Positions 3,093 to 60,671 of a DNA stretch of 64,000 nucleotides are shown one piece after another. Origin of the DNA: Antechinus flavipes (taxonomy: Eukaryota); assembly GCF_016432865.1 (NCBI RefSeq), contig NC_067398.1, positions 678,094,001 through 678,158,000 of the forward strand. The letters are read 5' to 3'. Below the pieces are notes generated by a model. The model worked only from the letters and a program-made list of their open reading frames with translations. It was not told the origin of the DNA and searched no databases. The translations under genes and the position numbers were made by a program. Numbering within the stretch: position 1 is the stretch's first letter; every line of letters starts with the position of its first letter.

Positions 3093-3185
3093 GCACAGTA
3101 TCCTCCTCAGATACCCCGGGTCATTTGGGTACAGACGAACCAACAAGTGACCCTTTAGAACCTGTGAACACCTCCAATCCTCTGG
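3093..3185 (+). CDS. Small mucin exon, 93 nt (TVSSSDTPGHLGTDEPTSDPLEPVNTSNPL)
   Basis: ttcttcag|GC acceptor; CTG G|GTAAGT donor; phase 1-1; absent from ORF track. Confidence 0.7.
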
Positions 3186-3804
3186 GTAAGTAGAAGTTTT
3201 CATTCTATTGTTAATATAGAAGGAGCTCACTCCAGAGCTGGAAGGTCTTCACAAGGCCAGCTAATCATCAATGTAGCATCCGAGTGTCAGAGAAGTGAGT
3301 GGACTTGCTGAAGGCCTGCTTCCTTATTTTCTGTCCCTTACTCAGACTAATCAGAGCAGAACAAGAGCTTTTCTTTCTGGGCTCACATTTTATTTTCCTT
3401 TTTCTTCTACTTGTCTACTTGCCTGGAATTTTATTGGGATGGGCAGGTTTGTAAATTGTAAATTGTAATAGGCCATATCGCCTCAGAGTCTGGTGCTGTT
3501 AAATACCTTTTTAAAAACACAAACTGGAAGCCACTAGTCAATTCCTAAAGATACCACCTGATCTTTCTGTGGGAATCTTCCAGTCAACCTTGGAAAACAT
3601 GGATAGAGAACATGGATAGAGTCTGCCCTACTATGGTGCTCTCTCCCATCTTTAATTCCTAGTGGAACTATGTGGAACTGCAGCTAAGCTTCAAGACAAA
3701 CTATCTTGTAACAGTGACTCTTGCAAAGTTAGAGTAACAATTCTTAAATCAGCATGACATCTCGAAAAGTAACATTAAGCTCTAAGACTGCTCACACCAT
3801 TATA

Positions 3805-4350
3805 AAAGACCATAAATTTGGAGCTAAAAGAGATCTTAGAGATTACTGAATCCAATCTCTCACTTTACAGATGAGGAGCTAAAAGAGATCTTAGAGATTA
3901 CTGAATCCAACCCCTCACTTTACAGATGAGGAGCTAAAAGAGATCTTAGAGATTACTGAATCCAACCCCTCACTTTACAGATGAGGAGCTAAAAGAGATC
4001 TTAGAGATTACTGAATCCAACCCCTCACTTTACAGATGAGGAGCTAAAAGAGATCTTAGAGATTACTGAATCCAACCCCTCACTTTACAGATGAGGAGCT
4101 AAAAGAGATCTTAGAGATGACTGAATCCAACCCCTCACTTTACAGATGAGGAGCTAAAAAAGATCTTAGAGATGACTGAATCCAACCCCTCACTTTACAG
4201 ATGAGGAGCTAAAAGAGATTTTAGAGATGACTGAATCCAACCCCTCACTTTACAGACGAGGAAACTGAGACCCAGAGAGATTAAAGAGACATGTCCAAGA
4301 TTAGGTGGGTAGCAAGTAGCAATAGCTGAGTTTTGAATCCAGATCCAAAA
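3805..4350 (-). mobile_element. MIR-type SINE hosting the 55-bp minisatellite
   Basis: After the last unit the sequence continues gaaactgagacccagagagattaa...tttgaatccagatc (reverse MIR core). Confidence 0.7.
3821..4260. repeat. 55-bp minisatellite x8 inside a MIR-type SINE
   Basis: gagctaaaag starts at 3821, 3876, 3931, 3986, 4041, 4096, 4151, 4206. Confidence 0.95.
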
Positions 4351-4739
4351 GGTGCTTGTTTTAGGGAAAACAATAACTCCAACAATAAACATTTACCCAA
4401 TACCTGCTAAATGTGTATATGGCACTAGGCTCAGAACTGGAAAGAAAAGACAAAAGCTTAAATTCTGTTGGGAAGATAGAAGGAGATAACAAAGTTTGGG
4501 GAGTTTGGTGGGTACAGTTAGAGGATCAGCAGCTAGCAGTGGGGAGGGAGGTGTTGCTAATGATTCCGATAGCTCTCCTATCACCATCCTTCTGCTCTTC
4601 CCAACCAATCAACTGCTTAGTCACCAGACTATCTCTGCTCTACCAGGGGTAGAGTGGCAGGTATTGCCCTGACTATACAGGAAACCTGGGAGCTCTCTAG
4701 GCTCCCTGAAAAAGACTAGGTCCTTTTTTTTTTTTTCAG

Positions 4740-7280
4740 AGACCTCAGTGGAGACAGTGAGTGGGGAGACAGATCCTGGCTCTACCACTCCTCAGCCAAC
4801 CAATGTCCCTGAGTCCATCTCTACGAGCAGCCATGGATCTGGGGCACCCACAGAAGCCCCTATGCCAACTGAGATATCTACCCAAGTGACCACAAGACAT
4901 GAAGACCTTTCTCATACCCCACTAAAGCCCACTGTTGCTCCAGGTTCCAGTCCCCCCTTAGAGGCTAGCACACTTGGGATAGTTTCCTCTATTCTCCCTG
5001 AGACAATTTCCTCTATCCTCCCTGCAGCCAACCCAACTGCAGGTATGATCACTGGAGAGATCAATCCACCAGTTCCCACATCATTGTCTACTCCAGTTGA
5101 TTCCTTGTACAGTAAAGTTTTTGGTGGAGGAGTGGGAACAAGTCCCAAAGTCACATGGATACAACCTACTTCAACTGTGATGAAAACTACGTCTCCAACC
5201 CCAGAGAGGTCAAAGTCCCAGGCAAGAAGTGAGCTGAGCTCCTCTACCCTGTCTCCCATTGCCCTGAGTGATGTCCCAATAGCTGTTGGAGGAGACATAG
5301 GCATAACTGTGCCATTTACAAAAACAGCTACCGAGGGTATGGTAGTGATGACATCCAGCACCTTCTCTAAGCCTGAAGAAACATCCCATACCGTTCAAAG
5401 TCCACACCCGAGCTCCTTGGACTCTCCATCCATTCCCTGGACTGAGAGAGCAACCTCTTTGAGTGTAGAAAAGACTCTCTATTCCAGGGCTGTCCATAGG
5501 CCCTCGAGCTCATCTGACACCACAACCAAGACACAGACCAGCAAAGATGCTGCTCCATCTACTGAATCCACTGAAGTCTTGGTTGATCAGGAATCAACTA
5601 GCCCAATTCTTGTCACCAGCGAAAAAACACTGAAAAGTATAAATGTGACCTCCGGAGCCACTCGAGTGATTGAAGCCGGCACAGCAGGGAGAACTTCATT
5701 CTCAGAGACCAGCTTACTCTCATTCCCAGAGTCCTCTGATTCTACTGAGGTCAGAACCAGTCTCACGACAAGTTCTACCAGAAGACCCAGCTCTGAGACA
5801 GACCTGTCTTTTGGCGTCTCCAAGTCAGAGGAGTGGGGCTACTCGACATCTCCCCCCACATCCTTTCTATCTGTGGACGCATTGACATCTGTTGTCAGTA
5901 ATGGAGCAGAAGTGACAGAAGCTTTTTCTCCAACTGCTGGCCCCACGGGGATCACCACTTCTGAAAAAGTCATCAGCTATCTGGGACTTGGAGCCACCAC
6001 TGTAGGGAGCCTTGGGTCTGGGGCGCCTACAGGGACCATCTCAACTTTGGGAGGAACCACCGCACAAGCTGAGACAACTATCCAAGTGACAAGACATGAA
6101 GACCCTTTTCATCCCCCACTTAAAACCACTGTTGCTCCAAGTTCCAGCCCTCCGCTGGAGACTAGTACACTTGGGACAGTTTCCTCTACTTCCCCTTCAG
6201 CCTCCCCAGCAGAAGATCCAATGACTGGCGAGTTTCCCCACTCAGTTTCCACGCCATTGTCTACTCCAGCTGATGCCTTGTACACCAAAATTTTTGGTGG
6301 AGGAGCGGGAACAAGCCCCAAGGTCACATGGATACAACCTACTTCAACTCTGTTGAAAACCACATCTCCAACTCCAGAGAGGTCAAAGTCCCAGGAAAGA
6401 TCCGAGTTGGGCTCCTCTCCTCTGCCTCCTATTGCCCTGACAAATGCCCCAGTGGCTATTGGAGGAGACACAGGCTCGACTGTGGCAGTCACAGAACAGA
6501 CAGCTGAAGACAGGACAGCAAAGATAGCTGTCACCTTCTCGGAGCTGCCAGAAACATCTCTGACCACTCAGAGTCCACGCTCCAGCCCCTTGGACCCTCC
6601 ATCCATTCCCTGGACTGAGGGGAATGCAGAAAAGACTGTCTATTCCAGGGCTGTCCATGGGCCCTCCAGCTCATCTGACCCCACACCCAAGGCCCAGAAC
6701 AGCAAAGATGCTGCTCCATCTACAACAGCCCCAGATGAACAGGCGTCAACAAGCTCAATTTTTGCCAGTCGAGGAAAAACACAGAAAAGTGCCAGTGAGT
6801 CCTCAATAAGCCCCCTGGTGGCCAAGGGAGGAACATCAGACACAGAGACGGGCTCAGAATTCATCGATTCCTTCTACACAAAAGTTTTTGAAGGAGGGTT
6901 GAAAACCACCCCCCGCAGAACCTGGTCCTACCAAAGTCTGATCTCTACCAGCTCTTCGGTGGTAGAATCCCACAAGTCCCTCAGTGCTCCAGATACAAAC
7001 GTGAGCCCATTTTCCTCTGAGACCTCTCTCTCTACTGACGCCAGTACCAGCTTCAGGATAAGTCCTCCTGGAACGTCCAGCGCAAACTCATACACGGCAC
7101 TCACCCACACCCTACTCCCAAGCATAGCTGCAATCAAAGCTTTCATGACTTTGGAGTCAAAGTCTGGGACCCGAGAGACATCGGCTCGGGCAGAGACGCA
7201 AGACCTCCTTTTAGAGGTTACAGCGAATGGGAGCAGCCCTCCGAGGGTTCCCTCTCCTACTCCCGCCACCCTGCTTACAA
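4740..7280 (+). CDS. Mucin large exon, 2541 nt, with internal diverged duplication (~4880-5570 vs ~6080-6730)
   Basis: poly-T-cag|AG acceptor; ACA A|GTAAGC donor; 847 codons; matches ORF 4748..7339. Confidence 0.85.
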
Positions 7281-8972: not shown

Positions 8973-9074
8973 CAATTGGTGACAAGCAAGGTCCCAGTAC
9001 TCACAGTGCAGAGCTGCCTTCAACAGAAGGTCCCAGATCTCCAGTCAGTGAGCCCCTGCTGCCCACCACGCCAG
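8973..9074 (+). CDS. Array small exon S1, 102 nt (IGDKQGPSTHSAELPSTEGPRSPVSEPLLPTTP)
   Basis: gactgacttaccatttctacag| acceptor homologous to S2-S7; CCA G|GTTAGT donor; phase 1-1. Confidence 0.6.
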
Positions 9075-13067: not shown

Positions 13068-13181
13068 GAATGGATGAGAGCCTAAGTCCCAGCACCCAGA
13101 GTGCAGATCTACCCTCACCTGCACGTCCCAGATCTCCTGCTAGCGAGCCTATGGTGCCGACCATGCCAGCCACTGTTGCAG
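13068..13181 (+). CDS. Array small exon S2, 114 nt (MDESLSPSTQSADLPSPARPRSPASEPMVPTMPATVA)
   Basis: ccttttacag|GA acceptor; GCA G|GTAAGA donor; phase 1-1. Confidence 0.85.
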
Positions 13182-17139: not shown

Positions 17140-17253
17140 GAATGGGTGAGAGCCTAAGTCCCAGCACCCAGAGTGCAGATCTACCCTCACCTACACGTCC
17201 CAGATCTCCTGCTAGCGAACCCATGGTGCCGACCATGCCAGTCACTGTTGCAG
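17140..17253 (+). CDS. Array small exon S3, 114 nt
   Basis: tttttacag|GA ... GCA G|GTAAGA; open; phase 1-1. Confidence 0.85.
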
Positions 17254-17958: not shown

Positions 17959-20900
17959 ATACAGGGTTATCGAGCAGAAGCCCAGATGCCATAGGTACGG
18001 GGCACGCATCCCCTGTCAGCAGAGAGGACCCGGAGCCCACCAGCCTGCCTGTGGTTGCATCCTCCATGGGAATCTCCACCTTTAGGAGCCCAGCAGTGAC
18101 CGAGCCTGTAGAGACAGCTCCTGGCTCAGCCTCTGCTCAGGCCTCCAGCTTCCCTGTGGGCTCTGCCTCAGAGAGTCCAGCCCTGGACACCACCAAGGCC
18201 TCCATGTCTTCTCCGGTGACAGAGGACCCCAAATCCTTGGAGACTTCTGCCACCAGGACGATGGGCACTGGCTCCCGGCCAAAGGCTCCTATCCCGGGGA
18301 AGCCGCAGGTGGTTCCAGGCTCCAGCGCTCCCCGCCCCTCCGGCTCCCAAGGGACAGTTTCCTCCCTTTCCCCCATGGCCAGCCCCAGTGCAGACACCAC
18401 AGCAGCAAGGGAGTCTGACAGCACGGAGCCTGCAGACAGTCCCCCAGGGAGCTCCTTCCCTCCGGAGTTCTCGGCTTCAGGGCAAACTAGCAGCCACACT
18501 CTTTCCCCAGCTCCTTCTCACACAGGCTTCCATAGCCAAGTCCCAGAGATGGTCCCCACATCCATCCCAATGCGCATGGGGACTTGGAGCACGTCAGGGA
18601 GGCCGGAAAGTGAGACGGGCCCTGGAGCCATTTCATCTGGGCCACCCTCCACTGGCCTGAGTCAGTCGTCCTCCCCTGAAGCAGGAGGAGCAGCCACAGA
18701 CACAACATCCATGGCAGGGAGCACAGGGACCTCGTTATTGTCCATCAGTGTCCCTGTATCCACAGCGAGTTTGGGAACTCCCATCCCTTCTAGAATGCCC
18801 AGCCCTTCCACGGGGAGCCTGGAGACCTCCTGGCCTGAGACAAGGACCTCCCCTTTCTCTCCTGGTGTGGTCCACATGGGCCACAGCACGGGCTCTGCCA
18901 GCACCCGGCTCCTCCCGTCGGCATCCCTGGCCACTGGGATACCTGTTGGTACGACTGGGCAGCCGTCTTTGGGGACTCCCATGCCCGAGGGGGGGGCCAG
19001 TTCTGCGGCTTCTCTTGCAACCTTCCCACCCAGTGGGGGCACACAGAGCAGTGCGGGTGGGGAGTCCAGCCCCTTCCTCCTGCATGAGCCCAGTCCCACA
19101 AGCTCTGAGACCACGATGGATGTCTCTGGCTCCCGGCTTCCTGCACAGACTTCCACACTGAGACACGTCCCAGCTCCCACCGTGGGGCCCAGCACTGACA
19201 CACCGGGTCTTCCCCCCTGGGACCACAGCTCCAGTGTGCCAGTGACCATTGGTGGGGCTGAGACCCCCTCCGGGCTGGGGCCAAGGACCGCAGCTGGAAC
19301 TTCTGCCTCTAATGACCCTCTTGCTCATCCTGGGGAAGGTACAACGGTCTCATGGTTTTCTAGCCCAGCTGAGGCCGCCATGGGTGTGCTAAGCTCCAGC
19401 CTGGATTGGCTCCGGATTCCCACAGTAGTCACCCCTGAAGCCCCCTCTGAGTCCAGCACCCTGGGGGATGATGGGAGTTCTTCTGTCCCTGGTATTGAAA
19501 GGACAAAGCTGCCTCCCAGCAGTCAGAGCACAGTCAGAAGGGCCACCCCTCCTGCCTCAGCTTCATCCATGGAGATCCCAACCCGGGAAGGAGGGGCTGG
19601 CGCAGCTGCCTCAGTGACTGCCTCCCTGCCTGTAGGTTCCACTCCCTCAGGCCCTGGGAGTGGAGCCCCAGGTTCTGCCTCCTTGGCCATTAGCTCCCCA
19701 GGGGAGGGGAGTAGAGCCCATGAGCTGTCAGCCACAGCCTCAGAGACCACCTCCCTTCATTCCTTGACCACGTCACCAGTGGAAGTGTCCACCAGGGAAG
19801 TCCCAGCTACTGTGACAAGAGAGGGCACTGAAAGGAGACTCAGTCAAGAGCCCCCTACTAGCCCAGAAGTCATCCCAGTCTCCTCTAGGGACACAGCTCC
19901 CACAGGGACAAGCCCCCTTCTGCAGGAGGTATCCCTTGGGCCAAGTACAGAAGGTCTGCCTGTCACTGACCTGCCAACAATGACTGAGACCATATCCCCA
20001 TCGGCCCCTGGGCCGGCTGCAGAAGCTAGCTCAGCTTCTCCTCTTGCTCCGGTCACATGGCTCAGCCTTTCTGCCACATCCCCCAAGTCCACAGCAGAGA
20101 CCCGTGGAGCATCTTGGGCCAGGACTGTTTCTTTGGGCCCAACCCACTTCATGACAGAGACCTCAAGGTCTGGGCTGGCCACCTATGAAGACAGGGTTGT
20201 AGCCACCTTCTCAGAGAAGACCAGTGGGGAAACAGCTTCCATTTCAGCTTCTCCTCTTGCTCCGGTCACATGGCTCAGCCCTTCTGCCACATCCCCCAAG
20301 TCCACAGCAGAGACCCTTGGAGCATCTTGGGCCGAGACCGTTTCTTTGGGCCCCACCAACTTTACGACAGAGACCTCAAGGTCTGGGCTGGCCACCCACG
20401 CAGACAGGGCTGTGTCCACCTTCTCAGAGAATGTCAGCGAGGAAACAGCTTCTACTTCAGCTGCTCCTTTGGTCACAGCAACAGGGTCCCTCGGGTCTAC
20501 AGAGCAGGAGTCCAGCCCCACGCGATCAGGCATGTCTACCACTGAGGAGTGGAATGGTTCCAGTCTCAGCCCTCCTCTGACCCGCGTTTCCATCACCTCA
20601 GCTCCTAGCTCACAGTCCCCTTCCTCTGGCTCTGGGAGCAGCCCCCCAACGGCACCAGACACCAGCTTTGCCAATGCCCTGGAGAGCACCTCGTCCCCAG
20701 GGACCAGTCTTGTGTCTGTCCAGTCCTCAGAGGCCGCAGCAACTACTTCCGGGCTGTCACACTCCTACCCAGGCTCCTCGGCTGAGTTCATGCCCCCCTC
20801 CACTGCTTCGACCAAGAGCTCTGCACCTGGGATGGCCACATCTTCCAGGTCCCCTGTGACCTTTCCCATCACCACTGCGTCAGAGACAAATTCCAAAGGG

Positions 20901-40620: not shown

Positions 40621-40717
40621 GAACTGCAGGTAAAAAATATAAACCTCCATTTTCCCTTTCTCAGATGGATGGGTATTCAGTCCACCTGGGACTTCTCTAG
40701 GGCAAAATCCATTTCTT

Positions 40718-43306: not shown

Positions 43307-43420
43307 GCAAAGAGCCTGATGTGATACCCATCACACAAATCCCAGACCAAGGAGCAACAGAAGGCCTTGCAGCACTGACAAGTAGTCCTCCAGCACTCAT
43401 AGACACCCTTAGTACTACAG
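43307..43420 (+). CDS. Small exon, 114 nt (KEPDVIPITQIPDQGATEGLAALTSSPPALIDTLSTT)
   Basis: cccttctgcag|GC ... ACA G|GTAAGT; phase 1-1; absent from ORF track. Confidence 0.8.
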
Positions 43421-44510: not shown

Positions 44511-47500
44511 AGGTAGTTGCCATGGAAACACTTCCTCCTACTCAGCCCATGAGCAACTATGTACCTATTGGTACAAGTAACCAACGAATTGAGACACCTA
44601 CAGAATCTAACTTTTCTTCAATAGGAACCACTGCTTCAATAGGAATCACTGTGCCCAAGACATTCGAAGGAGTGAACATGGGTACGAGCAGCCTCTTGCT
44701 CCCTTTGACTTCAGTTGATCCCACAGCTACCTCTGACTCAAGTATTGTATTAAAGACCAACCAGCCTGGGACACTTTCCTCTCCTCTCCCAGTGATCACA
44801 TCTAGAGCTACCATGGCTACCATGGAGAGCACGAGTACGGAACCAATATCAAGGTCAATTCCATCAGATGTTCTCCAGACAACTATCTCAGTTTCAGGGG
44901 TGGGCATCAGCTCCCCTGCTTTCCTGTCCTCCTCTCCTTCACCAACGAGTATGAAAGAAATGGGGGAAAGTTTTGCGCCAACTCCAATGCAAGCTGAGAT
45001 TGCAACCCCAGAGAAGTCAGACACCCAGACGCGAACAGAATCTGGTTCAGCTGCTTGGCCCACTCCTGCCGTAAACATCATCCCAAGTGCTGCTACAGGA
45101 GGCACAAGTGCATCCTTGGCATCTACAGAAGGGAAAAGTGGGCTCATAACATTATCTGTTTCCTTTGTGGAGAGTACATATAAACCCCAGGCAATACCCA
45201 AAGAGCAAACACATTCCATGGAACCCTCAACTCTTTCATGGCCAGAGATAACATCTACTGTTGCCCCCCATGATGTAAGACAGGAAGACAACCACTCCAC
45301 AACTAACTCATTTCTTGGGACAGGTGCCCCAACAAGCCAAACTGCACCTCTTGCTACTGAACCCACTAAGACCTCACATCCTGAGGGAGTGACCAGTTCA
45401 ATTGAACCAGTGACTGCACACACAGCTTTTCCTCCTAGTGCCAGTCCAGAAGAGATCCGAGATTTGACCACTCATGATAACAGGCATCTGGGTAGTAGTT
45501 TGGTCTCCAAAACCACCCCTGTGCTTGAGATGAGTATGGCGGGTAGTGCTAAAGGATCAGCTGCTAGCACAACTTTTCCTGCTGAGACCTCAGCTGACCT
45601 CCAGGAAAGTCCTACTAAAGAGTCTAGCACAGGGCCAGAAGGCTTTGCCACTCTCCTTCTTCCCACAGGGCCCAGACTTGGAACTGAAACAGCCTTGACC
45701 CCTGTATCAACAATGGCAGTTGAAGATACTTTTACCAGTAGTAACTCTGTGACTCCTACAGAAGAAAGAACAATCAGCACCTCATCTTCTACCACATCTG
45801 AAAGTACATCTCTTATCATGACTAGGATGGGTAGCACCTCTACTTGGTCAAAAATCCTCAGTTCATCACCCACCACGGCTTCATCCAGGATTATCCACAT
45901 ACCTGAGGACATCAGCTCAGCTTCTCCTAGTGCAGACAGTACAAGTCCCATCCAAAGCAACAAGGTCATAGACATTGTTCCTCATTTTGTTGGGACCACT
46001 CATAGCCTTGAGCACCCAAAGACATTGGCAGAGAGCAGCACTAGTGGTCTATCAACCACTTTCTTATCACTTAAATCACCCATATCCTCAGCTACATCTA
46101 TTGGAAGACCAGAACTATTGAGCATTTCTACTGGCTCAACTACAAGGGAAATGATGACTCAGGGTATCCCACCTGAAGACTTAGAGGTGACCTCAGATTC
46201 TCCCTTGACCACTTTGAACATGGCGGCCATGGCTAGCACTGTCACAGCCATGGAGATGGAAGGAATGTCTTCAGTTCCTCTATGGCCCACCATAGATATT
46301 CAAGTGAGCTCAGTCCAACCTCCTAGTAGCAGCACTAAAGATCTCCCTCAACAAAGCACACTCATTTTCCAGTCCCCCACCACAGCTAAATCCATGGATC
46401 TCATCCCCACAGGAACAGATATTACCACATCATCACCACAGACTGACTCTTCTTCAACTTCTGTGGCCTTATCTGGGATTACTTCCAAGATTACTACTGA
46501 GGACATGAGTTTAACTGCTCCTGGGACAGAAAGTCTCATCAAAAGCAGTGAGGTTATAAATAGAACTCCTCTTTCTATGATCACTGACAGTCCTGAACTT
46601 CCAAGCACAGAGGCAGAGAACAGTACAGGAGCCCCACTGACCACTGTGTCACTTCAACCTCTCATGTCCTCACTAGCTGTTACAGGTCCTCTGAGCATCT
46701 CTGCTGATAGAACTTCCCCAGAGACTATGGCTCATAGTGTTCCACAGACAGACACAGAGATAAGCTCCGATCTTTCCTTGACCACCTTGCTTATGGTGAC
46801 AACAGTCAACACTTTCACAACTGTAGTTATGGGAGAGATGTTATCTCCAGTAAATAAGATTCACTCAACCCTATCTCCTGGTGTCAGCAGCTCCATGGCT
46901 GTCCCTGAACAAAGCACAGCTATTCCACAGCATTCTGCTACAACTGAAGCTGTAATGCTCACCTCCACTAGATCAGATGCCGCTACTATTTGGCCACAGA
47001 CTATCCCTCCTTCAACTCCAGTAGGCTTATCTATGGTTACCCACGTGGCTGAGGATGTGGGTTCATCTACCCTTATCACTGAAAAAACAAATCTCGCCTT
47101 TAGCAGCAAGGTCACAGACATGATCCCTCTCTTTCCTGTAACTACACTCACTTCTGAACTCCCAAGTATAGTGACAGAGAACAGCACAGATGTCCCACTG
47201 ATGACCACTCCTTCTAAAACTCCTGTTTTATTAGATATTACCTCTGAAAGAACAAGCCAATTGAGCACCCTTGCTGATTCAGCTTCCTGGGGGCCTACAA
47301 CTCATTCAGAAATGAGCTCAAATCTCCCTCTGGCCACAGCCAGCACTGACACAGACATGGTGATAAGAGAAATATCAGACATTCCAGGGCCTAGCCCAGA
47401 AACTGAAGTGCACACCACCCTTCCTCCTGGCACTATTTCAGAAAAGATCTCAAGCTCTGAGCCCATGTTTCCCAGGGAGATAAGTCCTGCCACCCAGCAG

Positions 47501-48485
47501 GTTGTTGTGACCACAATGATCCCTTCTTATTTTGGACAAGAATCAAGTCTGATTTCTATTACTCAGGCTGAGCCATCTGAAACTCAAAGAGCAATAGTTA
47601 CCCAAGTTCCACTGGAAAGTTACACAAAATCTCCCTTGTCTCCTACTGAAGCTGAGACCACTAGAATAGGGGCCATAACAACTCCTACTCTGGCATCTGA
47701 ACTGGGGAACATCCAGTCTTCCACGGGTACCATCTCAGGCTCAGAGGTCAACATGACCTATTCTACTTTGTCATCTTCCTTGGAAAGTCCTAGAACACAA
47801 ACTACTAGTCCTGAGAGAGTAGCAAGTTTTTCTCTGGCACTATCCACTTTGCCAACTGAGAAATCATTGGCAGCAGGTACTTATTCACCAATCTCTATTT
47901 CCACAATGCTTTCTGAAATCACTGCACCAAAGACCAGTGCTCAAAGATCTGAAAATCAGAGCACAGCTCCCCTGGAAGCTGGCACAGCTCCAGCAGTGGG
48001 GACCAGTCCTGCTGTGACCTTGATCCCTTCACAGTCAAAGGTCATGACTTCTATCAGCATGGAAATGGAAACCATGTCAAGTTCAGCTGCCTCATCACCA
48101 ATAAAAACAAGCTCTCCAAGTCTAAATGACATCACATTAGATGATAATTCCCTGAAGCCCTCCGCAAAAACAGTGACTGCCAGCCTTGCCCATGATTCTC
48201 CAAGTCAAAGCCTAAATGTCTCTCCTACTGTTACCATTTCTGCAGCCTTGATAAGTTCCAGTCCGCCTGGGACTGCTCCCTCTAGGGAAGGATCAGAGAA
48301 AGCCACTTTTATTGCAGAATCAGTGGAAACAACTCTAGCTGTCACTCTGTCTCCAGCAAGAATACAGGAAGCCTGGACATCATCACCTCCTTCCCCAGCA
48401 TCAACAGCCCCAGAGGGTAACAGTGCTATGGCAGGAATAGCCTCTATTTCTGCTCTCGTACCTGCCAGCTCCACTCTGTTCACAA
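44511..48485 (+). CDS. Mucin large exon, 3975 nt
   Basis: cttctttttcaaatacttcaacag|AG acceptor (in-frame TGA upstream at 44438); TTC ACA A|GTAAGC donor; 1325 codons. Confidence 0.8.
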
Positions 48486-48976
48486 GTAAGCAGACTCCTA
48501 ATTAAGAGGATGTTGATGAGGCCTTGAAGGAGACAGATGGGTGGAATCTATAGTAGAATGAGAATCACATTTGGGCAAAGACATTAATATCATAGCCAAT
48601 TAATTTCTCTTTGGATGTCTGTTTTGGGCTACTTTGGTGCCGGAACTTCAAGGTTGTATCTGTTAGATCAGCATAATTGTTCTAGTCTATCTCATCTCCC
48701 AGTGAGAAGATTGTCTAGGGTCTCAGATCCCAAAGATTTTCTGATTTCTTGTTGCTAAAATTAAGATATTTCCAGTTATTTTAAGATATAATGGGACTGT
48801 TTGGTACTGAAATAATGCTTTGGAGGAGAAACTTTCATTAGCCAGTAAGAAGGAAGAAAAAATAGAAGGCATGTAGTTTGGGGTTTCCACTCAGTAAGGA
48901 CAATGTATTTCTTTTGAGTGTCCAGTAATCTGACGTGACTGATCCCTGGGCAACCTTCCCTTATACTTTCCTGCAG

Positions 48977-49081
48977 GTGGTTTGGGGCCTGACACCCATA
49001 TTCCTGATCATGAAGTTCCAGGAGGCACTGCAACCATGACAAATGGACCCCTGATACCTGTGTCCCTTGTCAGTGCCCCAG
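48977..49081 (+). CDS. Small exon, 105 nt (GLGPDTHIPDHEVPGGTATMTNGPLIPVSLVSAP)
   Basis: ctttcctgcag|GT ... CCA G|GTCAGT; phase 1-1. Confidence 0.75.
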
Positions 49082-49329
49082 GTCAGTGGGTGGCTCCTCT
49101 ATCTTTCCTCTGTTGGGGGTTCCACTTTTCTGGGGTCTCATTTCCTGATCTTTGTCAATGACTCATTGGTTCATCTTTGTAACTTCAGAAGAATGGGCTT
49201 CTGGCTTAGGTTTTGAGCTATCAAGGATCAGAATCAGGAAATTTTATATTTGGAAGAGATGTGAGTAATTATTTGGTCTACTCAAAACTGCAGGAGAACC
49301 CCCATACCAGCCTAGCCAACAAGTATCTC

Positions 49330-49660
49330 AAGTATATCTTTTTCTCGAAGACATCACCTGAAGGAGAATCCACTACGTCTCTCACTTTGGGGCAGCTCTC
49401 ACTGTTAGAAAGTTATTTCCTGACATCAAACATAAATTTACCTCTGCATTTTGAATCCATTGCTTTTGTTTTGGCCTCAGGAGATTACCCAAGAAAGTGA
49501 AATACACCATCCGAACAAGAATCATCCAAATACTTGAAGACAGTCAGTATATACCCCCTTTGAGCCATCACTTCTCTGAGTTAAAGTTTCCTCAGTTCCT
49601 TCAACAGATGCTTATATGGATATGGCTTTGATATGCTTCACCATCTTGCTTGTCCTCTGG
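49330..49660 (-). mobile_element. L3/CR1 LINE fragment
   Basis: caaatacttgaagacag...cagttccttcaac, typical of the reverse L3 3' region. Confidence 0.5.
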
Positions 49661-50350
49661 AATCATATATCTAGAAATTGAAGGGACTTTAGTCGACTAG
49701 TGCAGATGTCCTAAAATAGAGTAAATGGAGACCCAGAGTGGACCTTTGCCCAAAATCTCATAAGGAACAAGCATTAAAGATATAGATTAAATCACATTCC
49801 TTTGAAATCCTCCATAACATTTCCTCTCCCATTTCTTTCTTTCTTTCTTTTTTTTTTTTTTTTTTGATGAAGCATGTGGTATAACAATTTTGGAAAAGAT
49901 TTGGTTAGGACTAAGATAGGTATCCATCAATTGAACCTAGGTTAATTTTCTATCCTAATTAATGCCCCTGCCCTAGATATCAGTAGAACTGCAGTTAAGC
50001 ATTAGTTCGTTCTTATCTCTATTCCATAAGCTTTCCTGGAATTTACATGACCTAAAAATGAATCTTGATATGGTTCATTCAGAGGGGTGTTTCATAAACT
50101 AATATGGCCATCCTAATATGGTTATAGCATAGCAATATGTAGCAATCTGTGGTAGAATCCTTAGACTAAAAAGGAGGCTTAATCAAGAATTGAGCTCAAC
50201 TAAAGAATATGGGGAAAATGAGGTGTGGGGGATTGGGATCTATCTTCATACAGAAAGAGCCTGAGAGGCAGTGAGAATCTTTCTAAATGACTCCAAACTT
50301 CCCCCTGTCAACCCTTACACACATCCTTCAACCAATTGCTCTGGTCACAG

Positions 50351-50990
50351 GATTCTCTACCAGGAGTACAGTGACATTGAAGAATGTGAGTGGGTCTGAC
50401 CTGGAAAAAGAATCGACAAATGTCACCAGCACTCCTATGATTGGATCTACTGTGAGAGATTCCATTTCAGACACTACAACAGAAATAGTTGTCATGGAGA
50501 CAACTCCAGGTATAATATCCAGGTTCTCACTATGGCCACTGTAACAGGTGGCATTAGACCTGAGACACATAGGTCAACCACATAATTCCCTTATAGAAAC
50601 CTCAGTTTCCTGAAGGGATCTCACACTAACTTATAGTGTGAGTTACTATGGGCATTGGAAACCCTGCAGTTTCCATGACTCTATTGGATTCCACAGCCAC
50701 CGCAGGTAATTGTGTTCCCTTCAAAATCAGTCCAGCTTGGACAATTTCTTCCATTTTCCCTGCAGACACATCTATAGCAGAAACAGCCCCTAAAGAGTTC
50801 CAACACACCTTTATCTCATGGCCTGCTCCAGTTGATTCTTCCCATACCACTGTCTGAGTTATAGGAATTGAAATCAGCTAAATTTTATCTTTAATCTCAA
50901 CTTTCTATAGCCATCAGTGTCACAGAGATTGAGTCAAGCCCAGATTTGCCTATGAGGCTAATCATCCCAGAGAAACACTATGCCATAAAA
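50351..50990 (+). pseudogene. Decayed/truncated large exon (paralog of the 52301 and 61740 exon starts)
   Basis: ctggtcacag|GATTCTCTACCAGGAG acceptor shared with 52301; frameshift then TAA at 50542-50544; right end approximate. Confidence 0.7.
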
Positions 50991-51009
50991 ATCTAAAGAG
51001 AAGAGAGTA

Positions 51010-51250
51010 TTCATGAAAATGGGGTAACAGTATTAAAAGCTTCAGAAATATTGAGAAAAGATCATTTGGTTTTGAAATTAAGAGATTGTTAATAACATTG
51101 AGAGGATGAAGAGATTGTTAATAACATTGAGAGGATGATTTCATTTTAATGATGAAGTACCTCTTGTACACAAAGTATCTCAAAGACTTTGAACAGAAAA
51201 AGAAAGAGCGATAAGGAATAATAGCTATCAGGGACAAATGGGTAAAGTGA
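51010..51250 (-). mobile_element. L2 fragment with a 29-bp tandem duplication (51080/51109)
   Basis: aagagattgttaataacattgagaggatg occurs twice in an L2-like context. Confidence 0.4.
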
Positions 51251-51475
51251 TGATTTTTGTTTCTTTGTTTTTGTAGATGGAGTAGTAGAGAAATAGTCAG
51301 TAGACAAGCAGAGATTGTAGTGTGAGACAATGGGACAATAGAGGAACATTCTGCTGTGTAAAGGATGAAGTAAAGAAAGCACATATTTTGGAGTTTGCAG
51401 TCAGAACATATGGAGATAATATATTGTCTTTTCTACTCTCTTGACTGTGATATGTATACTTACTTGATCCTACAG

Positions 51476-51592
51476 GTAGTGAGGTTGCTATAGTGCCTGT
51501 CACACATATCCCAGATCATGAAGCACCAGGAGAAAAGGAAGTACTGACCACCAGTGGCCCTCTGGTACCTGAATCTACTGTAGGCCCTGTGG
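51476..51592 (+). CDS. Small exon, 117 nt (SEVAIVPVTHIPDHEAPGEKEVLTTSGPLVPESTVGPV)
   Basis: cctacag|GT ... GTG G|GTAAGT; phase 1-1. Confidence 0.8.
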
Positions 51593-52300
51593 GTAAGTAA
51601 ATACCTCTTTTCTTTCTCTTGTGCTGGTATTCACCCTTCCTGGGTCTTTCCCCCAGTTTTGAGACAAGATATGGACTCATCTTCAGTCTAAGAGCAAGAC
51701 ACTGATAGGGGAATTTATAATTAGAGTGCAAGATTTGGCAGCTTCATCTGCTATATTATTTTCTTCACTGAAGTATGTTGTGATAAAAAAATGAAGAACT
51801 ACTAGGGATTTGGTATTTTTCAATATTCACTTGCATGCACACATTATTACTTCCCTGATAAAAGTCATCCATAGGAAGGCAAGAGTCTTTTTCATTCTTG
51901 TCTATGCATTCCCAGCATCTAAAGCCCCAAAATGAATGGCACATAAGAGTAGTTGATGCTTTTGATTTTTGATGAGAACATGTATCCACCAGGCAGGCAG
52001 ACTGTCTGAGCCTGGATCCCTAGACTTGTGCCAAGAAGTCAGGGAGATCTGCCTAAGGCACTGATCTCTTATTATTTAGTAATTCTCATGGTGGGGTGGT
52101 CTCATAGACCCAGGCAGAATCCTTTTTGTTATTGAAAATTCTTGTCGAGGAGAAAGCTGAACATTGGAAAGTAATGTGAGAAGTTGGGATTTCATTGTTT
52201 TTCCCAAGAAGGAAGTAGTCTTTAACAGGCAATTTCCAAATGACCCCAAACTTTCCCCATCAACTCTTAGGCACATTTCAACCAAATGCTCTGGTCATAG

Positions 52301-55300
52301 GATTCTCTACCAGGAGCATAGTAACATTGAAGAATATGAGTAGGTCTGACTTGGAAAGAGAATCAGCACAGTTCACCAACACTCCCATGACTGGTTCTAC
52401 TATGAGAGATTCCATTTCAGATGCTGAAACAGAAACATTCACCGTGGAGACTATGCCAGCTACAACAACTGCTCAGCCCTCCCTTCTTCTCACTATGGCC
52501 ACTGTAAAAGGTGACCACAGCCCTGCGACACACAGGACAACCATGCACTCTCCCACAGAAGCTTCAACTCCGTCTGAGACATCTCTTGGAGTGACCATGG
52601 GGGTGGGAAGCCCCACAGTTTCCATGACTCCGGCAGAACTGACAGCCAGCACAGTCTCTGATGGTCCCTTAAAGGTCAACCCAACTGAGAAGATTTCTTC
52701 TACATCCCTTTTGGACACACTTGTATCAGAAAGATCTCCTAGAGAGAGTCACAGTACCACTCTGACTCCATGGCCCACTGCAGTTGACTCCATCCATATC
52801 ACTGCCTCACCCCCAGGAATGGAAATCAGCTCCATGTTGCCTCTATCTTCAATTCCTGCAGCTGCCAGTGATAAAGAAACCACGCCAAGCCTAGATTTGC
52901 CCATGAAGCATACTCCCTCAGAGCAACAGGATGTTCAGACTGTAACGGAGCAAGGGTCAGCTGCCCTGTCCTCCACTGTTTCCAGCATCATTCCAACATC
53001 TGTTGGAGGGGACACAAGCATTTTCTTGGTGTCTACAGAAGGTCCAAGAGAGGATAAAACAGTTTCTAGCACTTTGCCAGACACTCCTGGAATCACTCAG
53101 ACAGAGCAGATTCATTCTACAAGCCGAGGAGGGCCTGACAGAAGCTTCACCTCTTCTCTGGCCCCTCTAAGTGAAGGAGGCAGCTATGCTAGGACTGTCC
53201 CCTCGCCCTCTGTAGAAGGCATGACAAGCCCGGCTGAACCTATCTTGGAGTTCACAGAGCCCACACTTCCAGAGGAGGGCACTCCCTCTGTTGCACCAGT
53301 GACTGAATTCAGCACCACGGACAGTGGAAAGTTACAGAGTAGTTTGGACTCCACCAGCACCCCAGTGTGGGAGACTAGTAGACCAGGCAGCACTGAAGCT
53401 TCAGATACCAGCACACTCAGCCCAGGGAAGTTTCATCCTGCTGAGAGTACAGCTAACCTCATGCCAAGTCCTATGGGAGGGTCCAGCCCAGAACCAGCTG
53501 TCTACACCACTCTATCCCATACTTCAGATATTACTACAGAGACCAAGCTTAGAGGAGAGACAGACTTGTCCTCGATATTAACCACACCAGCATCTGCTGT
53601 CTCCATCATCACTATCTCGGAGGCTCTGCCTGGAATAAGAACAGGGGTTCCCTGGTCCTTGACCTCAGCTGAAAACACAGATATCACCACAGATATCACC
53701 ATGATTGGTAAAGATACTATGTCTACTTTGCCACAGACCTTTTCTCCTCCATCTCCAGACATCTTATCTGAGGTTACTTACAAGGCTGAGGACATGAGCT
53801 CCAATGTTCCCAGGACTGAAAGCATAAAGGTCACAGACATGACCTCTCTTTATCCTAAAGATACTACCAACCAACAATTTTTGGGGACAGTGGAGGAGAG
53901 TAGCACAAGTGTTTCACTGATCACTTCTTCACTTGGACCTCCTGTGTCCTCAGCCTCTATTATGGGAGAAGTAACAAATATGTCAGGTACCACTACTGAC
54001 TCAATGCAAGTGACTACCACACATGGAATCCCAAATAGAGACTCAGAGAGGACCTCAAGTCTCCCATTGGCCACAGAGGACACAGACAATACTTCTACAG
54101 CCAAGATGCCTGGCAACATCTCTGTGCTCCCTACAGAGCACAGCACAGAAGATCAAATGAGTTCAGCCCTGCTTCCTACCACCAGTCCCAGTTCCATGGC
54201 TCTCTCTGTTCCAAGAACAGTTTCCCCCTCATCTACCACAGCTGAAACCAGGACTCTCACCATCACTGGAACAGATAGCATCTCTTCTTCAACTCCTATA
54301 ACCTCATCTGGAGTTACTCCCTTCACTGAGAACATGAGCTCAACTGCCTCCAGGACTGATGCCACAAGTCTCATCTTTAGCACTAAAATCACAGACATTG
54401 TCCCTTTCTCCCCTATGGTCACTTTCAGACCTGAACTCCCAAGTATGGTACCAGAGAAAAGTACAAATTCCCCACTGACCACAATTTCTATTAAAGTTCC
54501 AGTGTTCTCAGATACTAATCCTGTAGGCTCATTGGTCACCTCTGTTGGCTCAACTCCCTTGGAGACTACTCATGGTGTTCCACATGCAGACTTAGAGAAA
54601 ACCTCTGAGCTTCTTCTGACTTCCTTAACCACAGAGACTACAGAAAGTACTATTACAAGCAGAGCAACAGAAGGCATCACCTCAGCTTCTCCAGAGTTCA
54701 ACACAGGAGCTGAAATGAGCTCAGCCATTCCTTCTACCACAAGTCCAGCAGAGATTACAAAAATTTCTGAGGCCATGACATCCAGAGATATAAGCCCTTC
54801 TTCCATGTCACCAGGGGTGCCTACAGTGACTCCTGTCCATATTGGATCAGATTCAAGTCTGGCTTCCGTGACCCAGGATAAGCTATCCAAAACTCAAAGT
54901 CAATCAATCCTTACCAAAGTCCCACAGGAGAGTGACACAGAATTCCCTTGGTCTTCTACTGCAACTGAGGCCACTAAATCAGTGACCATAACAGATTCCA
55001 CTCCAATCTCAGAGTTTCAGGAGAGCCAGGCTTCCAAGCATGGCACTATCCCAGGAACAGAGGCCAGTAGGAACTATCCCACTTTATCTCCTTCAGAAAG
55101 CCCCATGACACATGATACTAGTCCTGAGAGGGCAACAAGCACTGATCAAGCACTGTCCACTTTGCCAGCTGAGAAATTACCTGAAACAGGTACCAGCTCG
55201 GCTACTTTTGTTTCCAAAATGCTTTCTGATGTCACTTCTTCAGAACCATGGACAAGTACTGAAGGGTTTGAAAGTCAAAGCATGTCTATCCTGGAGATGG

Positions 55301-55810
55301 AAACTGTCCTAGCAATTAGTACAGACCCTGCTATGACTTTTATCTCCCCACTGTCAAAGACCACAACTCCTGTCAGCATGGATATGGAAACTAATTTACC
55401 TTCTTGGGCAGCCAGCCCCTCCTCAAAAGTAGAAACAACTTCCAGTCTGGTTGATATCACTGTGGAAGAAACCTCCCAAGGAAGAGGAACTCATAGTCCC
55501 ATCCATGAATCTCCAAGTTCAAGTCCGGGCCCTTCTTCTGCCTTAACTACTCCTGAGACTTGGACAATAACAGGTGCCCTTGAAAATACTTCCCCGTTGG
55601 AGGACTCAGAGTCAGCTGGCCTTACTACAGAGTCTATGAGGAGCTCAGGGGAGACACCAACTCTAGATGTCAGTCTGCCTCCATCCAGAACACAGGAAAT
55701 CTTGATAGCATCTCCAAGCCCAACCTCCATGGCCACAGAAATCAGCAGTTCCAGAGCAGAGACGGCCTCTGTTTCTGCTCAAGTACCTTCCACTTCCACC
55801 CTGTTCACAA
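52301..55810 (+). CDS. Mucin large exon, 3510 nt
   Basis: ctggtcatag|GA ... TTC ACA A|GTAAGC; 1170 codons; ORF 52240..55863. Confidence 0.85.
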
Positions 55811-56290: not shown

Positions 56291-56404
56291 GTGGTGATGC
56301 TGGTGTTGTGCCGGTCACACATGCCTCAGGCCATGGAGTACCAGGAAGCATAGCAGCACTGACCAGAGGTCCTCTGATACCTAGGTCTACTCTTATTCCC
56401 ACAG
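56291..56404 (+). CDS. Small exon, 114 nt (GDAGVVPVTHASGHGVPGSIAALTRGPLIPRSTLIPT), GC donor
   Basis: ctctccctgcag|GT ... ACA G|GCAAGT; phase 1-1. Confidence 0.7.
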
Positions 56405-57054
56405 GCAAGTAGACACCTTCTTTCTGTCTCCCCTTTTGGAAGGTCACATCTTTATGACCTTGTATCTCAGTTTTACAGATAACATATGAGATTATTTAAG
56501 AGATGATTCATCTTCAAAGTTTGAGAACAAGAGTTCAGGATGGGGGTCTTAAATCATGACCATATCTTCTAGCTGTTCCCCCCTAAACCTTAATTCCTGG
56601 AATGTTGTGAGAGTAGCCTCTGAAAGTATAGCTAGTTGGGAACCATATTTACTTACTCAAGCTTGAGAAACACAGGAGGAACCACATCCTCTCCACAGAA
56701 ACTTCTTCAGTTCATCTGAGACATCTGGAGCCATCATAGGCATTGCAAACCTCCAACTCTTCCTGATGCCAGAAAAGGTTACAATTTGTTTTGTTAGAGT
56801 AGTCATTTCCACAAGGACAGGGACCAAATGATTCCTCTTTATCTTTTCATCCTTAATACCTAGCACAGTGTTTGGTACATAGATTGTGTTTGCTAAATGC
56901 TTATTTATCATTGTGTCATTTGTATTATCCATACAGACTATCTGAGTCTGGTTCCGTAGTCCATGTGTTTTTGGATGCTAGAAGAACTTCAGTTAAGCAT
57001 CCATCCAATATAGTTAAAATTCAGTATTAATGTGGCTTTCCATGAGGAAGCAGT

Positions 57055-57300
57055 GATGAATGAATAAAAACCCTGAACATTTATTACATGCTTAGTCTCC
57101 ACCAAGGACTACGCTAAGAGCTGGGGCTATAAGCACAAAAGCAAAGATAACTCCTGCCTTCAAGGAATTTGTTTTCTAATAAGGAAAACAACACATATGA
57201 AGAAGTGGTAGCCAGTAAGGGGGAATTTAATCTTGCATGGTACAGGGATGGTGAACGAAGGCCTAGGAGACTATGTGGACATACTACAATGGAGGAGAAT
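57055..57300 (-). mobile_element. L2 3' fragment
   Basis: tgaatgaataaa...catttatta...ctgccttcaagga. Confidence 0.5.
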
Positions 57301-57737
57301 TGACAAAATTTAATCATAGTTCCAGATCTGGAGAATATCTGGAAGATGAAAATATATGCACCTGGTTGAGGGTAAAGAGTAAAGCAATAACCTTGGATTC
57401 CATGACATAGATCAGGAGAGGCAGTTACTGATAAGTACTGTGAAAATCCAGGGCAGACTTTATAGGAATTAAACAGGAATCCTGCAGGACTAGTCTTTGA
57501 TGTGGACTTCAGGGCCATGATGAGGCTATAGAAGAGATGGCCAGAGTGCAGGTTAAAGTCCCTAAACAAGGTTGATGGAAATGCAAAGGATAAAGTGCCC
57601 ATGAGGAAGATAAAGTGAAGCATTAGGGATCAAGTGTTATCCTTAGAAAATAAAAAATTCTGCTGAAAGAAAATGGATATCCCTGCCAAAGTCTCACCAA
57701 ACCTCCTCACATAACAACCAACTACTCTGGCCCCAAG

Positions 57738-59146
57738 ATTCTCCAGGAACACTGAAGAGAGTTAGTGAGTCTGATGTGACAGGGAAGTTAAGTGTCTACC
57801 AGCACCCCCATGACCAGCTCCACAGTGACAGATTCTGTTTCAGAGAGTGCAAGAGATAGTTATTAGGGAAATCACTACAGGCACAATCACCTGGGGCTCT
57901 CATCTTTCTGTGGTCAAGGTCAAAAAGGGACTCAGACTTGAGACAGAAGAACAGTATCTTTCCCCATAGAAACATCAATTCTTCCTGAATAACTTCATCA
58001 TGAGCTACCTATAAAAGCTGAGGACATAAACTTAACTCTCCATGATTCTGCAACCACAAATCTGATCCTCAGCAAAAATGTTATCCCTTTTTCCTGTATG
58101 GTCACTCTTAGCCCTGAAATCCCAAAGTGGCAGAGCACAAAAAAAATCCCAATGACCACTCCCTGTCCCTAAAACTCCAGTCTCACAGTACTCCTGGAGT
58201 AATCAATCACTTCTACTGGCTTGAGGAGACAATGGCTAATTGTATCCCATATGTAGGCTTAGAGAAAATTAGAGCTTTCCCTAGCCATCTTAGTCATAGA
58301 AGTTAATATTGTAAATATAGTTTTCCCTAATACTAGTTTGAGAGATTTCAGAAAGTTAGGAGATTCAGACTCAGAGAGAAAAGCTCTACATCCAAGTGAC
58401 CAGTGGTAACCACAGTGACCTCTGCCTATGTTGGGTCAGATTTAAGTCTGACTGCTTTGATCTGTCTGATCAACTTGTCTGAGCTACCTGAGACACAAAA
58501 TCTAGTGATCCATAAAATTCTACAGGAGAGTAACACCAAATCCTCATTTTCTCTTACTACAATTGAAGCTTCTGGAGCAAGATCCAGTTTTTGCAGCTTT
58601 TATTCTTACCCCCAGGACTAGGGGAGGCCCAGACTTCCATAGATACTATCTAAGACAGAGAAACTTTATCTTATATTCTTCCTCAGAAAATCCCAGGACA
58701 CATATCACTGGACCTGAGTACCAAGTACAAACCAAGCACTGTCCACTCTGTCAACCTCAAGAAATCACTGGAAAATAGGGACTAGCTCAGCCCCCTCTGT
58801 TTTCACAAAACTGCCTAACGTCACTGCATTAGCATCAGAGATAGATACCCCAAGGTCTTTTGAAGGGCAAAGTACAGCTACCTTGGGGCCCAACATTGTT
58901 CCAGCAATAGGGCTCAGCCCTGCTGTGACCTTGATCTCTCCACTGTCAAAGGTCACAATTTCTAACAATACAAATATGGAAACTATGTCAAAGTCTGTTG
59001 TCTAGGCAACCAGTCCCTCACCACAGGTATAAATAAGCTTTCCCAATATGGTTGTTACCACCTTTGTTGGATCCTTTCTGAACTCTTCCTCAAATACCCA
59101 ATCCCCAATCCAGTCCATGAACCTGCTAGTTCTGCCTTGATCATAA
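57738..59146 (+). pseudogene. Decayed large exon (3' part paralogous to the 44511..48485 exon)
   Basis: 58800-58990 aligns with ~47905-48080; ends ataa|gtaagcagacttctaattaa like 48486; no long ORF. Confidence 0.7.
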
Positions 59147-59251
59147 GTAAGCAGACTTCTAATTAAACTTCACTTTAAGGGGTATTGATGTGGCCCTTGG
59201 GAATATGGGTGGATCAGTGAAATGAGAATTTTTTCTGGGTTAAAGATGATG

Positions 59252-59480
59252 ATAATATAGTTAACATTTTAAGGTTTGCAATGTGTTTTATACGTATTAT
59301 CTGATTTTAGTTTCACAGGAAAGCAGATGTTACTTTAGAGCCCTATTTTCTAGATGAGGAAACTGAGGCAGACATAGATTATGTGATCCTTTCAAGGTCA
59401 CCCAAACTAGTGTCTGAGTCTGTATTTGAATGCAGATCTTACTGATTTCTGATCTAGAACACTCTCCACTTGGCCACAAG
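59252..59480 (-). mobile_element. MIR-type SINE
   Basis: ctattttctagatgaggaaactgaggcag...aaggtcacccaaactagtgtctgag. Confidence 0.6.
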
Positions 59481-59839
59481 AATATCCTTTTCGGCATTTT
59501 CCTCTTTGAACCTTTATTTTGAGCCATTTTTGCACTTGAGTGGTCAGACATGCTATTTACTCCCTTGGAGTAAAATCTAGTGACCTTTGTTACCAGCTCA
59601 TTTTCCTCTTCTTGGGGGACAGGGATGGAGTGAAATGCTGACATTTCCCGTGATTCTAACAAATGTTAGGATTTTGCGATAGTGAAAAAGGACTTTGTCA
59701 TGGGAGTTTTCTGCAACTAGCATGTAGGAAGAAGGAACAGAAAAGTACAATTTGGGGCCTTCAAAAAGTACATATAGGGACATATTTTTCATAGTATCTC
59801 GCAAGTCTCATATTATCAATCTGTGGATCCATCCATCCT

Positions 59840-60260
59840 TTTTTAAAAAAAATTCATTTTTAAATTCAGCCCCTCCCCTGCCCATTGAGAGGAAGAAACA
59901 TATGATAATATAAATGTCACATGTATATGACTGAAAGTCATGCAACACATATTTCTGTATTAGCCATGTTGCAAAAAAGCAAGAAAAATAAAAATAGCAA
60001 AAAAAGTACTTTAGTCGGACTCTGATCATCAGTTCTCTCTTTGGAGGTAGATACATTTTTATCATGGGTACTTTGCAATTATCTTAGGTTGCATTGATCA
60101 GAGTAGTTATTGATCTTTCACAGTTGATCATCATTTCATATTGCTGTTCCTGTCTACAGTGTTCTCTTGTTTCTACTCACTTCACTTTGCATCAGTTCTT
60201 ATAAATCTTCCCAGATATTTCTGAAACCATTGTGTTCATCATTTTTTAACAGCACAATAG
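59840..60260 (-). mobile_element. Older marsupial L1-type 3' end fragment
   Basis: atcagttctctctttggaggtagat...gcattgatcagagta...cacttcactttgcatcagttc. Confidence 0.55.
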
Positions 60261-60262
60261 TG

Positions 60263-60497
60263 ATGTTCGTTGAGTCATTTTTCAGTGATGTGTCACCCTT
60301 CATGACCACAGTTGGGATTTTTTTGGGCAACGAGTGATTGCTATTTCTCTCTCCAGCTCATTTCACAGATGAGCAACTGAAGCAGGGAGGATAAATTGAC
60401 TTGCCCAGGATTACATAGTTGTGTTTGCGGTCATATTTGAGCTCATTCAGATGAATCTTCCTGATTCTAAGCTCAGTGCTCTATCCACTGCCCCACC
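60263..60497 (-). mobile_element. Mar1-like SINE
   Basis: gttcgttgagtcattt...catgaccacagttgggatttt...ccagctcatttcacagatgag...ctctatccactg. Confidence 0.7.
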
Positions 60498-60557
60498 CAT
60501 CATATACCACAATTTGTTCAATCACCTCCCAATTAAATCCCTCATTCATTCTTACAG

Positions 60558-60671
60558 GTGGTGAGGTTAGTGTGGTGGCGGCTACACGCATCCCAGGCCA
60601 AGGAGCAGCAAGAGGCACTGCAGCACTGACAAGTGCCTCCCCAGTGACTTTGTCTACAAGCAGTCCCACAA
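60558..60671 (+). CDS. Small exon, 114 nt (GEVSVVAATRIPGQGAARGTAALTSASPVTLSTSSPT)
   Basis: ttcttacag|GT ... ACA A|GTAAGC; phase 1-1. Confidence 0.8.

Follow-up and report, generated by a model that had tools for sequence, protein, structure and literature searches.

Small symmetric exons between large mucin exons in the probable N-terminal region of a marsupial MUC16 gene

Why should exons of about 38 codons stay open and spliceable while the very large mucin exons next to them fall apart? The question is raised by a 64,000-nt stretch of the Antechinus flavipes genome (contig NC_067398.1, positions 678,094,001–678,158,000; hereafter the window, with positions counted from its first letter), in which 14 small exons lie between large Ser/Thr/Pro-rich exons on the + strand. 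The original prediction had answered it either by selection on a 38-residue node (a hinge, binding or cleavage site) or by a role of the small exons as splicing stepping stones between very large neighbours. Our analysis leads to a different answer: the window probably holds a frame-neutral, modular N-terminus of MUC16, in which the small linker exons are kept open by staying in the mRNA.

A modular mucin region assigned to MUC16

The + strand carried a run of long open stretches of 630–1,350 codons, the translations of which contained 34–36% Ser+Thr and 9–13% Pro. Seven of these big-exon translations were compared with Pfam, and no family was matched. Big exons began with G-F/L-S-T/S-R-S right after the acceptor and ended in ...STLFTSK before a donor of the CAA/GTAAGC type (the slash marking the exon end). 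Together with a small exon of ~38 codons, each big exon of 2.5–4 kb formed a two-exon module, and all exons were symmetric in phase 1. The introns adjoining living big exons measured 0.46–1.3 kb, while intervals of 4.2 and 6.1 kb were found where the big exon had decayed.

A word search with the big exon B52 (Table 1) returned a koala protein, opossum "mucin-16-like" proteins with Pfam SEA domains and two unnamed proteins, to which a profile search added A0A7N4NI75 of the Tasmanian devil ("SEA domain-containing protein", 5,518 aa). The window matched A0A7N4NI75 with 77–95% identity over aa 11–3531, after which the devil protein carries at least ten SEA-like repeats ~155 aa apart, as found by local BLASTP with an opossum SEA domain. 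Multiple SEA repeats are a mark of MUC16 (Lang, Hansson and Samuelsson, 2006; PMC1552070). One mark of this mucin, the very large Ser/Thr/Pro-rich N-terminal region, was thus present in the big exons of the window, and the other, tandem SEA repeats of ~156 aa, lay outside it and was present in the devil counterpart. Because this counterpart has many SEA repeats, the window is, as judged from sequence comparison, the mucin-type N-terminus of the MUC16 orthologue in a dasyurid-like marsupial related closely to the devil.

The original prediction had suggested a profile search of mammalian mucins with the small-exon peptide. A profile of 13 such peptides, run against 1.84 billion representative proteins, gave seven matches at E values up to 1e-3, and all of them were marsupial (devil, wombat, koala and opossum). 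Homologues were therefore found in marsupial MUC16-type proteins, with no non-marsupial match among the 1.84 billion representatives; since the profile has only 37 positions, diverged eutherian counterparts may still exist. A word search with the two-linker region of the close-relative protein P0001 yielded just one further koala protein. In public models the same locus appears under unrelated names, such as 'flocculation protein FLO11-like' in wombat and 'mucin-2-like' beside 'mucin-16-like' in opossum (P0008, P0013, P0016). Such mixed names are annotation artefacts that stem from the modular, low-complexity nature of the gene. No published description of the exon structure of marsupial MUC16 was found in the literature; public gene models already include the exons, the architecture being ordinary though undescribed.

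The small-exon family and its decayed neighbours

All 14 small exons were located where the original prediction had placed them, and the ten exons of 114 nt as well as those of 117, 105, 102 and 93 nt were confirmed in their coordinates, bounds and frame. Every length was divisible by three. An AG lay upstream of every exon and a GT downstream of 13 of the 14, the exception being the exon at 56291–56404, in which a GC donor in the context CAG/GCAAGT, unlike that of the other 13, was found. The reading frame was open solely in the phase 1-1 frame in each of the 14. All of them were thus symmetric phase 1-1 exons of a length divisible by three, bounded by AG and by GT or GC and placed between big mucin exons. 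Four splice joints in transcript contigs (see below) were consistent with these bounds, and no runs of N occurred within the window.

The peptides of the small exons aligned without gaps, save at their ends and for one extra residue in exon 51476 (small exons are named here by their first position). With a nucleotide profile (nhmmer), 12 small exons were recovered at E values of 1e-21 to 1e-26 and exon 8973 at 3e-10, which placed 13 of the 14 below 1e-9; exon 3093 reached only 0.3. Because of this weak sequence match, the membership of exon 3093 in the family rests on its position and phase. The shared motif proposed for all the small exons was borne out as an alignable family motif, x-P-x-T-H/Q-I/S-P/A-D, often followed by G/E-P-L/M-V/I-P, in 13 of the 14, exon 3093 being without a match. 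The PVTHIPD type in the narrow sense was confined to the six small exons at the 3' side, the type found in the tandem array being PSTQSADLP. The element (G/E)PL(V/I/M)P occurred in 10 of the 14 small exons, or in five of the nine independent ones. A candidate origin for GPL(I/V)P, namely as a vestige of the start of a SEA repeat (human GPLLVPFT), was rejected, since opossum SEA repeats start without it.

The number of 114-nt exons overstates their independence. Six of them, at 13068–33075, are ~90%-identical copies within a tandem array at 9617–35042, and because of this only about five independent 114-nt lineages can be counted: the array type and exons 41692, 43307, 56291 and 60558. Exon 51476 is in effect a sixth: it measures 114 nt in koala, wombat and the close relatives, and its 117 nt in the window reflect a 3-nt gain (the relatives lack 3 nt at 51547). 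The shorter length of exon 48977 is old, since devil, koala and wombat have 105 nt there as well.

Decay of the big exon downstream of exons 41692, 48977 and 56291, as described in the original prediction, was recovered in all three cases, with the correction that the big exon after 48977 survives as a mini-exon (50351–50509). This mini-exon is part of a remnant at 50281–50905, within the interval 49082–51475, that shows frameshifts and a loss of ~3 kb. Between 41806 and 43306 only a 147-nt trace of a big exon was left (41933–42079). The interval 56405–60557 contained a longer remnant in mixed frames (Table 1). A further decayed big exon, at ~37.1–39.6 kb within the interval 35583–41691, followed a dead member of the small-exon family at 36336–36447. 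Just upstream of the acceptor at 52421, an in-frame G-F-S-T-R-S...DSIS segment (~52300–52420) duplicates the mini-exon; the spliced contigs of relatives lack this segment, which suggests that the start of a former exon has become intronic.

Splicing and retention of the small exons

Four sequencing runs (X1, X2, X3 and X6) were mapped on positions 47000–52999; all were stored as contigs and carried no information on relative abundance. Because the contigs were ~94–95% identical to the window, they were taken to come from close relatives rather than from the species of the window. Run X3 covered introns and looked genomic, while X1, X2 and X6 were spliced, X6 being a declared RNA library. Four GT..AG joints were observed in the relatives, in up to three runs from three studies: 48485>48977, 49081>50351, 50509>51476 and 51592>52421. 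Small exons 48977 and 51476 are thus present in the mRNA of close relatives, and the decayed big exon after 48977 still supplies a 159-nt mini-exon to it. The direct joint 49081>51476 that had been proposed was not seen in the mapped contigs, in which the two small exons were instead connected through the mini-exon. In the contigs, B52 was entered at the internal acceptor 52421, its own upstream G-F-S-T-R-S segment being unused. Two loose contig ends of X1 showed other forms. One led from the donor of big exon B44 straight to 50351, with 48977 skipped; the other led from the 3' end of exon 43307 to 50351, with both B44 and 48977 skipped, and the same form is found in the devil gene model.

Retention of the small exons was compared with a neutral simulation. 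At 0.1–0.3 substitutions per site plus indels, a small exon and its splice dinucleotides stayed intact with a probability of 0.04–0.25 each. Six small exons adjoining decayed big exons were intact in the window; devil, koala and wombat have intact orthologues in the same order, and opossum retains part of the set. Koala, too, has the mini-exon and the directly adjoining small exons, which dates the decay of those big exons to before its split from the lineage of the window. In the array, 16% of the small-exon columns were variable and none was gapped, compared to 32% variable and 13–16% gapped columns in the introns (Fisher p = 2e-4). Selection is keeping the small exons open and spliceable.

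The explanation that we consider likely for the locus as a whole starts from its modular build. The region consists of a repeated two-exon module in which every exon is in phase 1-1 and a multiple of three, and because the exons are symmetric, modules can be duplicated, skipped, cut down or lost without a break of the frame. The small exons form one paralogous family, as the modules would descend from one another, and their common length of 114 nt would be inherited. Lying next to short introns, small exons would continue to be spliced into the mRNA even where the big exon beside them has decayed. A stop codon, a frameshift or the loss of a splice site in one of them would truncate the protein upstream of the SEA repeats and the membrane anchor, and for this reason the exons would be kept open. 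We infer that the exons are selected mainly for upkeep of the reading frame, and that the species of the window splices like its relatives.

Several observations weigh against this explanation. The variable sites of the array small exon were spread evenly over the three codon positions (5, 8 and 5), which points to nucleotide-level constraint or gene conversion and not to protein-level selection. The joints 41805>43307 (devil and koala) and 56404>60558 (devil) are known only from gene models, and the spliced contigs stem from relatives and not from the window's own species. Inclusion of the small exons is not absolute either, as the family member at 36336–36447 is dead and exon 48977 is skipped in one contig. 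Finally, the omega (dN/dS) of ~0.4 in the motif columns means that some residue-specific function may exist.

This last point bears on the proposal that the 38-aa exon is a specific functional node between glycosylated blocks, for instance a bare hinge, protease site or docking motif. Such a node would be expected to stand out in evolutionary rate, which was assessed as protein identity between orthologues and as omega between paralogues. Identities to koala were 0.51, 0.58, 0.67, 0.68 and 0.79 for small exons (mean ~65%) and 0.65–0.67 for big exons; to opossum, 0.53 and 0.59 vs. 0.51; and to the close-relative protein P0001, 0.94 and 0.81 vs. 0.90. Between paralogues, nucleotide identity was 0.55–0.68 for small and 0.52–0.68 for big exons, and omega was 0.4–1.2 and ~0.6, respectively. 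Stronger purifying selection on the small exons than on the neighbouring big exons was therefore not seen in orthologue identity or in paralogue omega, and by these measures the small exons evolve as fast as the big ones. Their constant length was not significant: from the indel rate of the big exons, the expected chance of no indel in 38 codons was P ~0.5 between window and koala and 0.23–0.40 between paralogues, so that intact length is predicted by that rate. The idea of selection on the 38-residue unit thus held insofar as the exons are kept open and spliceable, and failed insofar as it implied a special conservation.

A mild protein-level signal was found in the motif columns V-x-P-V-T-H-I-P-D-H, with an omega of ~0.41 and a third-position identity of 0.47, i.e., without conservation of third positions. 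The extra constraint would accordingly be mild and limited to the ~10-residue VPVTHIPDH stretch. In line with a node, the first 18 residues of the small exons contained 14% Ser+Thr, less than half of the share in the big exons, and were richer in His and Gly, and strings resembling VVPVTHIPDH.APG recur in opossum, koala, wombat and devil. These features are outweighed by whole-exon identities to koala, opossum and devil that equal those of the big exons, by omega values near 1 in several paralogue pairs, by the lack of the GPL(I/V)P element in three of the six 3' small exons, by the one dead and the one skipped member, and by the marsupial confinement of the profile matches. We therefore regard a specific node as improbable. 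A wider form of the proposal, in which the N-terminal domain is a splice-adjustable chain whose rod length is set by taking modules in or out, with the His-containing, Ser/Thr-poor VPVTHIPDH linker as a bare hinge or a cleavage or docking point kept for ~80 million years of marsupial evolution, seems to us equally doubtful.

Still less probable is a role of the small exons as splicing stepping stones that would help very large neighbours to be recognised. Their splice sites are consensus-like and lie 0.46–1.3 kb from living big exons, and the reduced variation of the array exons relative to introns, free of codon-position bias, is compatible with nucleotide-level signals. Against such a role, small exons have been retained at sites without an adjoining big exon (41692>43307 and 56291>60558), one contig joins B44 directly to the next exon and bypasses 48977, and the third codon positions of the motif show low identity. 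As exons of up to ~20 kb are spliced in eutherian MUC16, large size does not by itself call for helpers. A stepping-stone role is not needed to explain retention. That the small exons are neutral survivors is barely credible: as mutational targets they are indeed 25–35 times smaller than the big exons and their constant length alone is not significant, but the simulated survival is low, six exons beside decayed big exons are intact together with their orthologues in devil, koala and wombat, two exons were seen spliced, and a state common to koala argues against a very recent decay of the big exons.

Tandem array, feature coordinates and comparison with known systems

The array at 9617–35042 consists of units that each comprise a big exon of ~2.3–3.1 kb and a 114-nt small exon. 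The acceptors of its big exons were intact in seven of seven cases. In unit 2, a 1-nt deletion just before the donor (16681) puts the donor out of phase, and in unit 4 the donor is disabled by a GT to CT change at 24715. A higher-order pattern was visible as well, in that units 1, 3 and 5 are alike at their 3' ends and units 2 and 4, both with disabled donors, have a common 5-nt insertion after the donor site. A 213-bp tandem duplication (2.1 copies, 89% identity) at 20031–20468, in the big exon of unit 3, accounts in part for the greater length of that unit. Outside the array, the intron between exon 3093 and the big exon from 4740 contained a 55-bp unit repeated 8.1 times with 98% identity (3820–4262). 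An inverted pair of ~205 nt with 85% identity, at 40712–40914 and 61185–61392 in two introns, probably represents an interspersed repeat. The coordinates of the main features are collected in Table 1.

Table 1. Exons, remnants and the tandem array in the window, with the evidence for each.
Feature	Positions	Strand	Evidence and remarks
Small exon, 93 nt, phase 1-1	3093–3185	+	AG/GTAAGT bounds, phase-1 frame open; weak family match
Small exon, 102 nt	8973–9074	+	Array-type peptide PSTHSAELP...EPLLP; nhmmer E 3e-10
Tandem array of ~4.1-kb two-exon modules	9617–35042	+	Self-BLAST, pairwise identity 85–94%
Array small exon, 114 nt	13068–13181	+	Bounds and frame; varies less than flanking introns
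Further array small exons, 114 nt each	17140–17253, 21574–21687, 25214–25327, 29405–29518, 33075–33188	+	
Dead family member, 112 nt	36336–36447	+	Frameshifted, in-frame TGA; koala orthologue intact in gene model
Small exon, 114 nt, VAPVSHIPDQ	41692–41805	+	Orthologues in devil and koala models, joined straight to the next small exon
Small exon, 114 nt, VIPITQIPDQ	43307–43420	+	Bounds, frame, devil and koala models; 3' end joined to 50351 in a contig end
Big mucin exon B44	44441–48485	+	Coordinates of the open stretch; donor 48485 from contig joint 48485>48977
Small exon, 105 nt, GPDTHIPDH...GPLIP	48977–49081	+	Joints 48485>48977 and 49081>50351 in runs X2 and X6
Mini-exon, 159 nt, phase 1-1	50351–50509	+	Surviving 5' end of a decayed big exon; joints 49081>50351 and 50509>51476
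Small exon, 117 nt, VPVTHIPDH...GPLVP	51476–51592	+	Joints 50509>51476 and 51592>52421 in X1, X2 and X6
Big mucin exon B52, as spliced in relatives	52421–55810	+	Contigs, acceptor 52421
Small exon, 114 nt, GC donor, VPVTHASGH...GPLIP	56291–56404	+	Devil model with identical peptide, joined straight to the next small exon
Big-exon remnant, mixed frames	58018–59166	+	Within 56405–60557; donor region recognisable at 59121–59166
Small exon, 114 nt, VAATRIPGQ	60558–60671	+	Bounds, frame, devil model
Big mucin exon B61, running off the window	61710–64000	+	Acceptor 61710 (devil model) or 61740 (homologue of the RNA-supported 50351 site)

As in MUC16 (CA125) of human and mouse, a very large N-terminal region rich in Ser, Thr and Pro precedes tandem SEA repeats of ~156 aa in the marsupial gene. 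The human region reportedly comprises a few very large exons, some of them separated by small exons of ~33–36 codons, whereas the marsupial region is split into many exons of 2.5–4 kb that alternate regularly with a family of 38-codon exons. In mouse Muc16, skipping of exon 3 would shift the frame (PMC2650410), unlike skipping of the symmetric exons described here. A mucin domain spread over many repeated exons is known from chicken Muc13, for which alternative splicing was proposed as a possible means of setting the length of the mucin (Lang, Hansson and Samuelsson, 2006; PMC1552070). In that gene every exon is one short repeat and all are alike, while in the window two very unequal types of exon alternate and whole modules are skipped. 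In DMBT1 (gp340), short Ser/Thr/Pro-rich linkers occupy their own small symmetric exons and alternate with larger repeated exons, the copy number of which varies through duplication and deletion of units. The large units of DMBT1 are folded SRCR domains of ~110 aa, in contrast to the disordered mucin blocks of 800–1,350 aa found here, and the linker of the window is the less glycosylatable part.

Since the exons are contained in public models and the data point to no distinct function of the linker, the locus would not open a major question. Its modular architecture does account for the way in which gene predictors split it into "mucin-16-like", "mucin-2-like" and "FLO11-like" models. A mucin domain is usually described as one giant exon, the length of which is changed by repeat slippage. 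A different route was probably followed in this membrane mucin, in which frame-neutral two-exon modules are duplicated in tandem, skipped, cut to a mini-exon or lost. The window would thus offer a concrete case of how symmetric exons allow a disordered domain of great size to lengthen and shorten while the gene remains unharmed.

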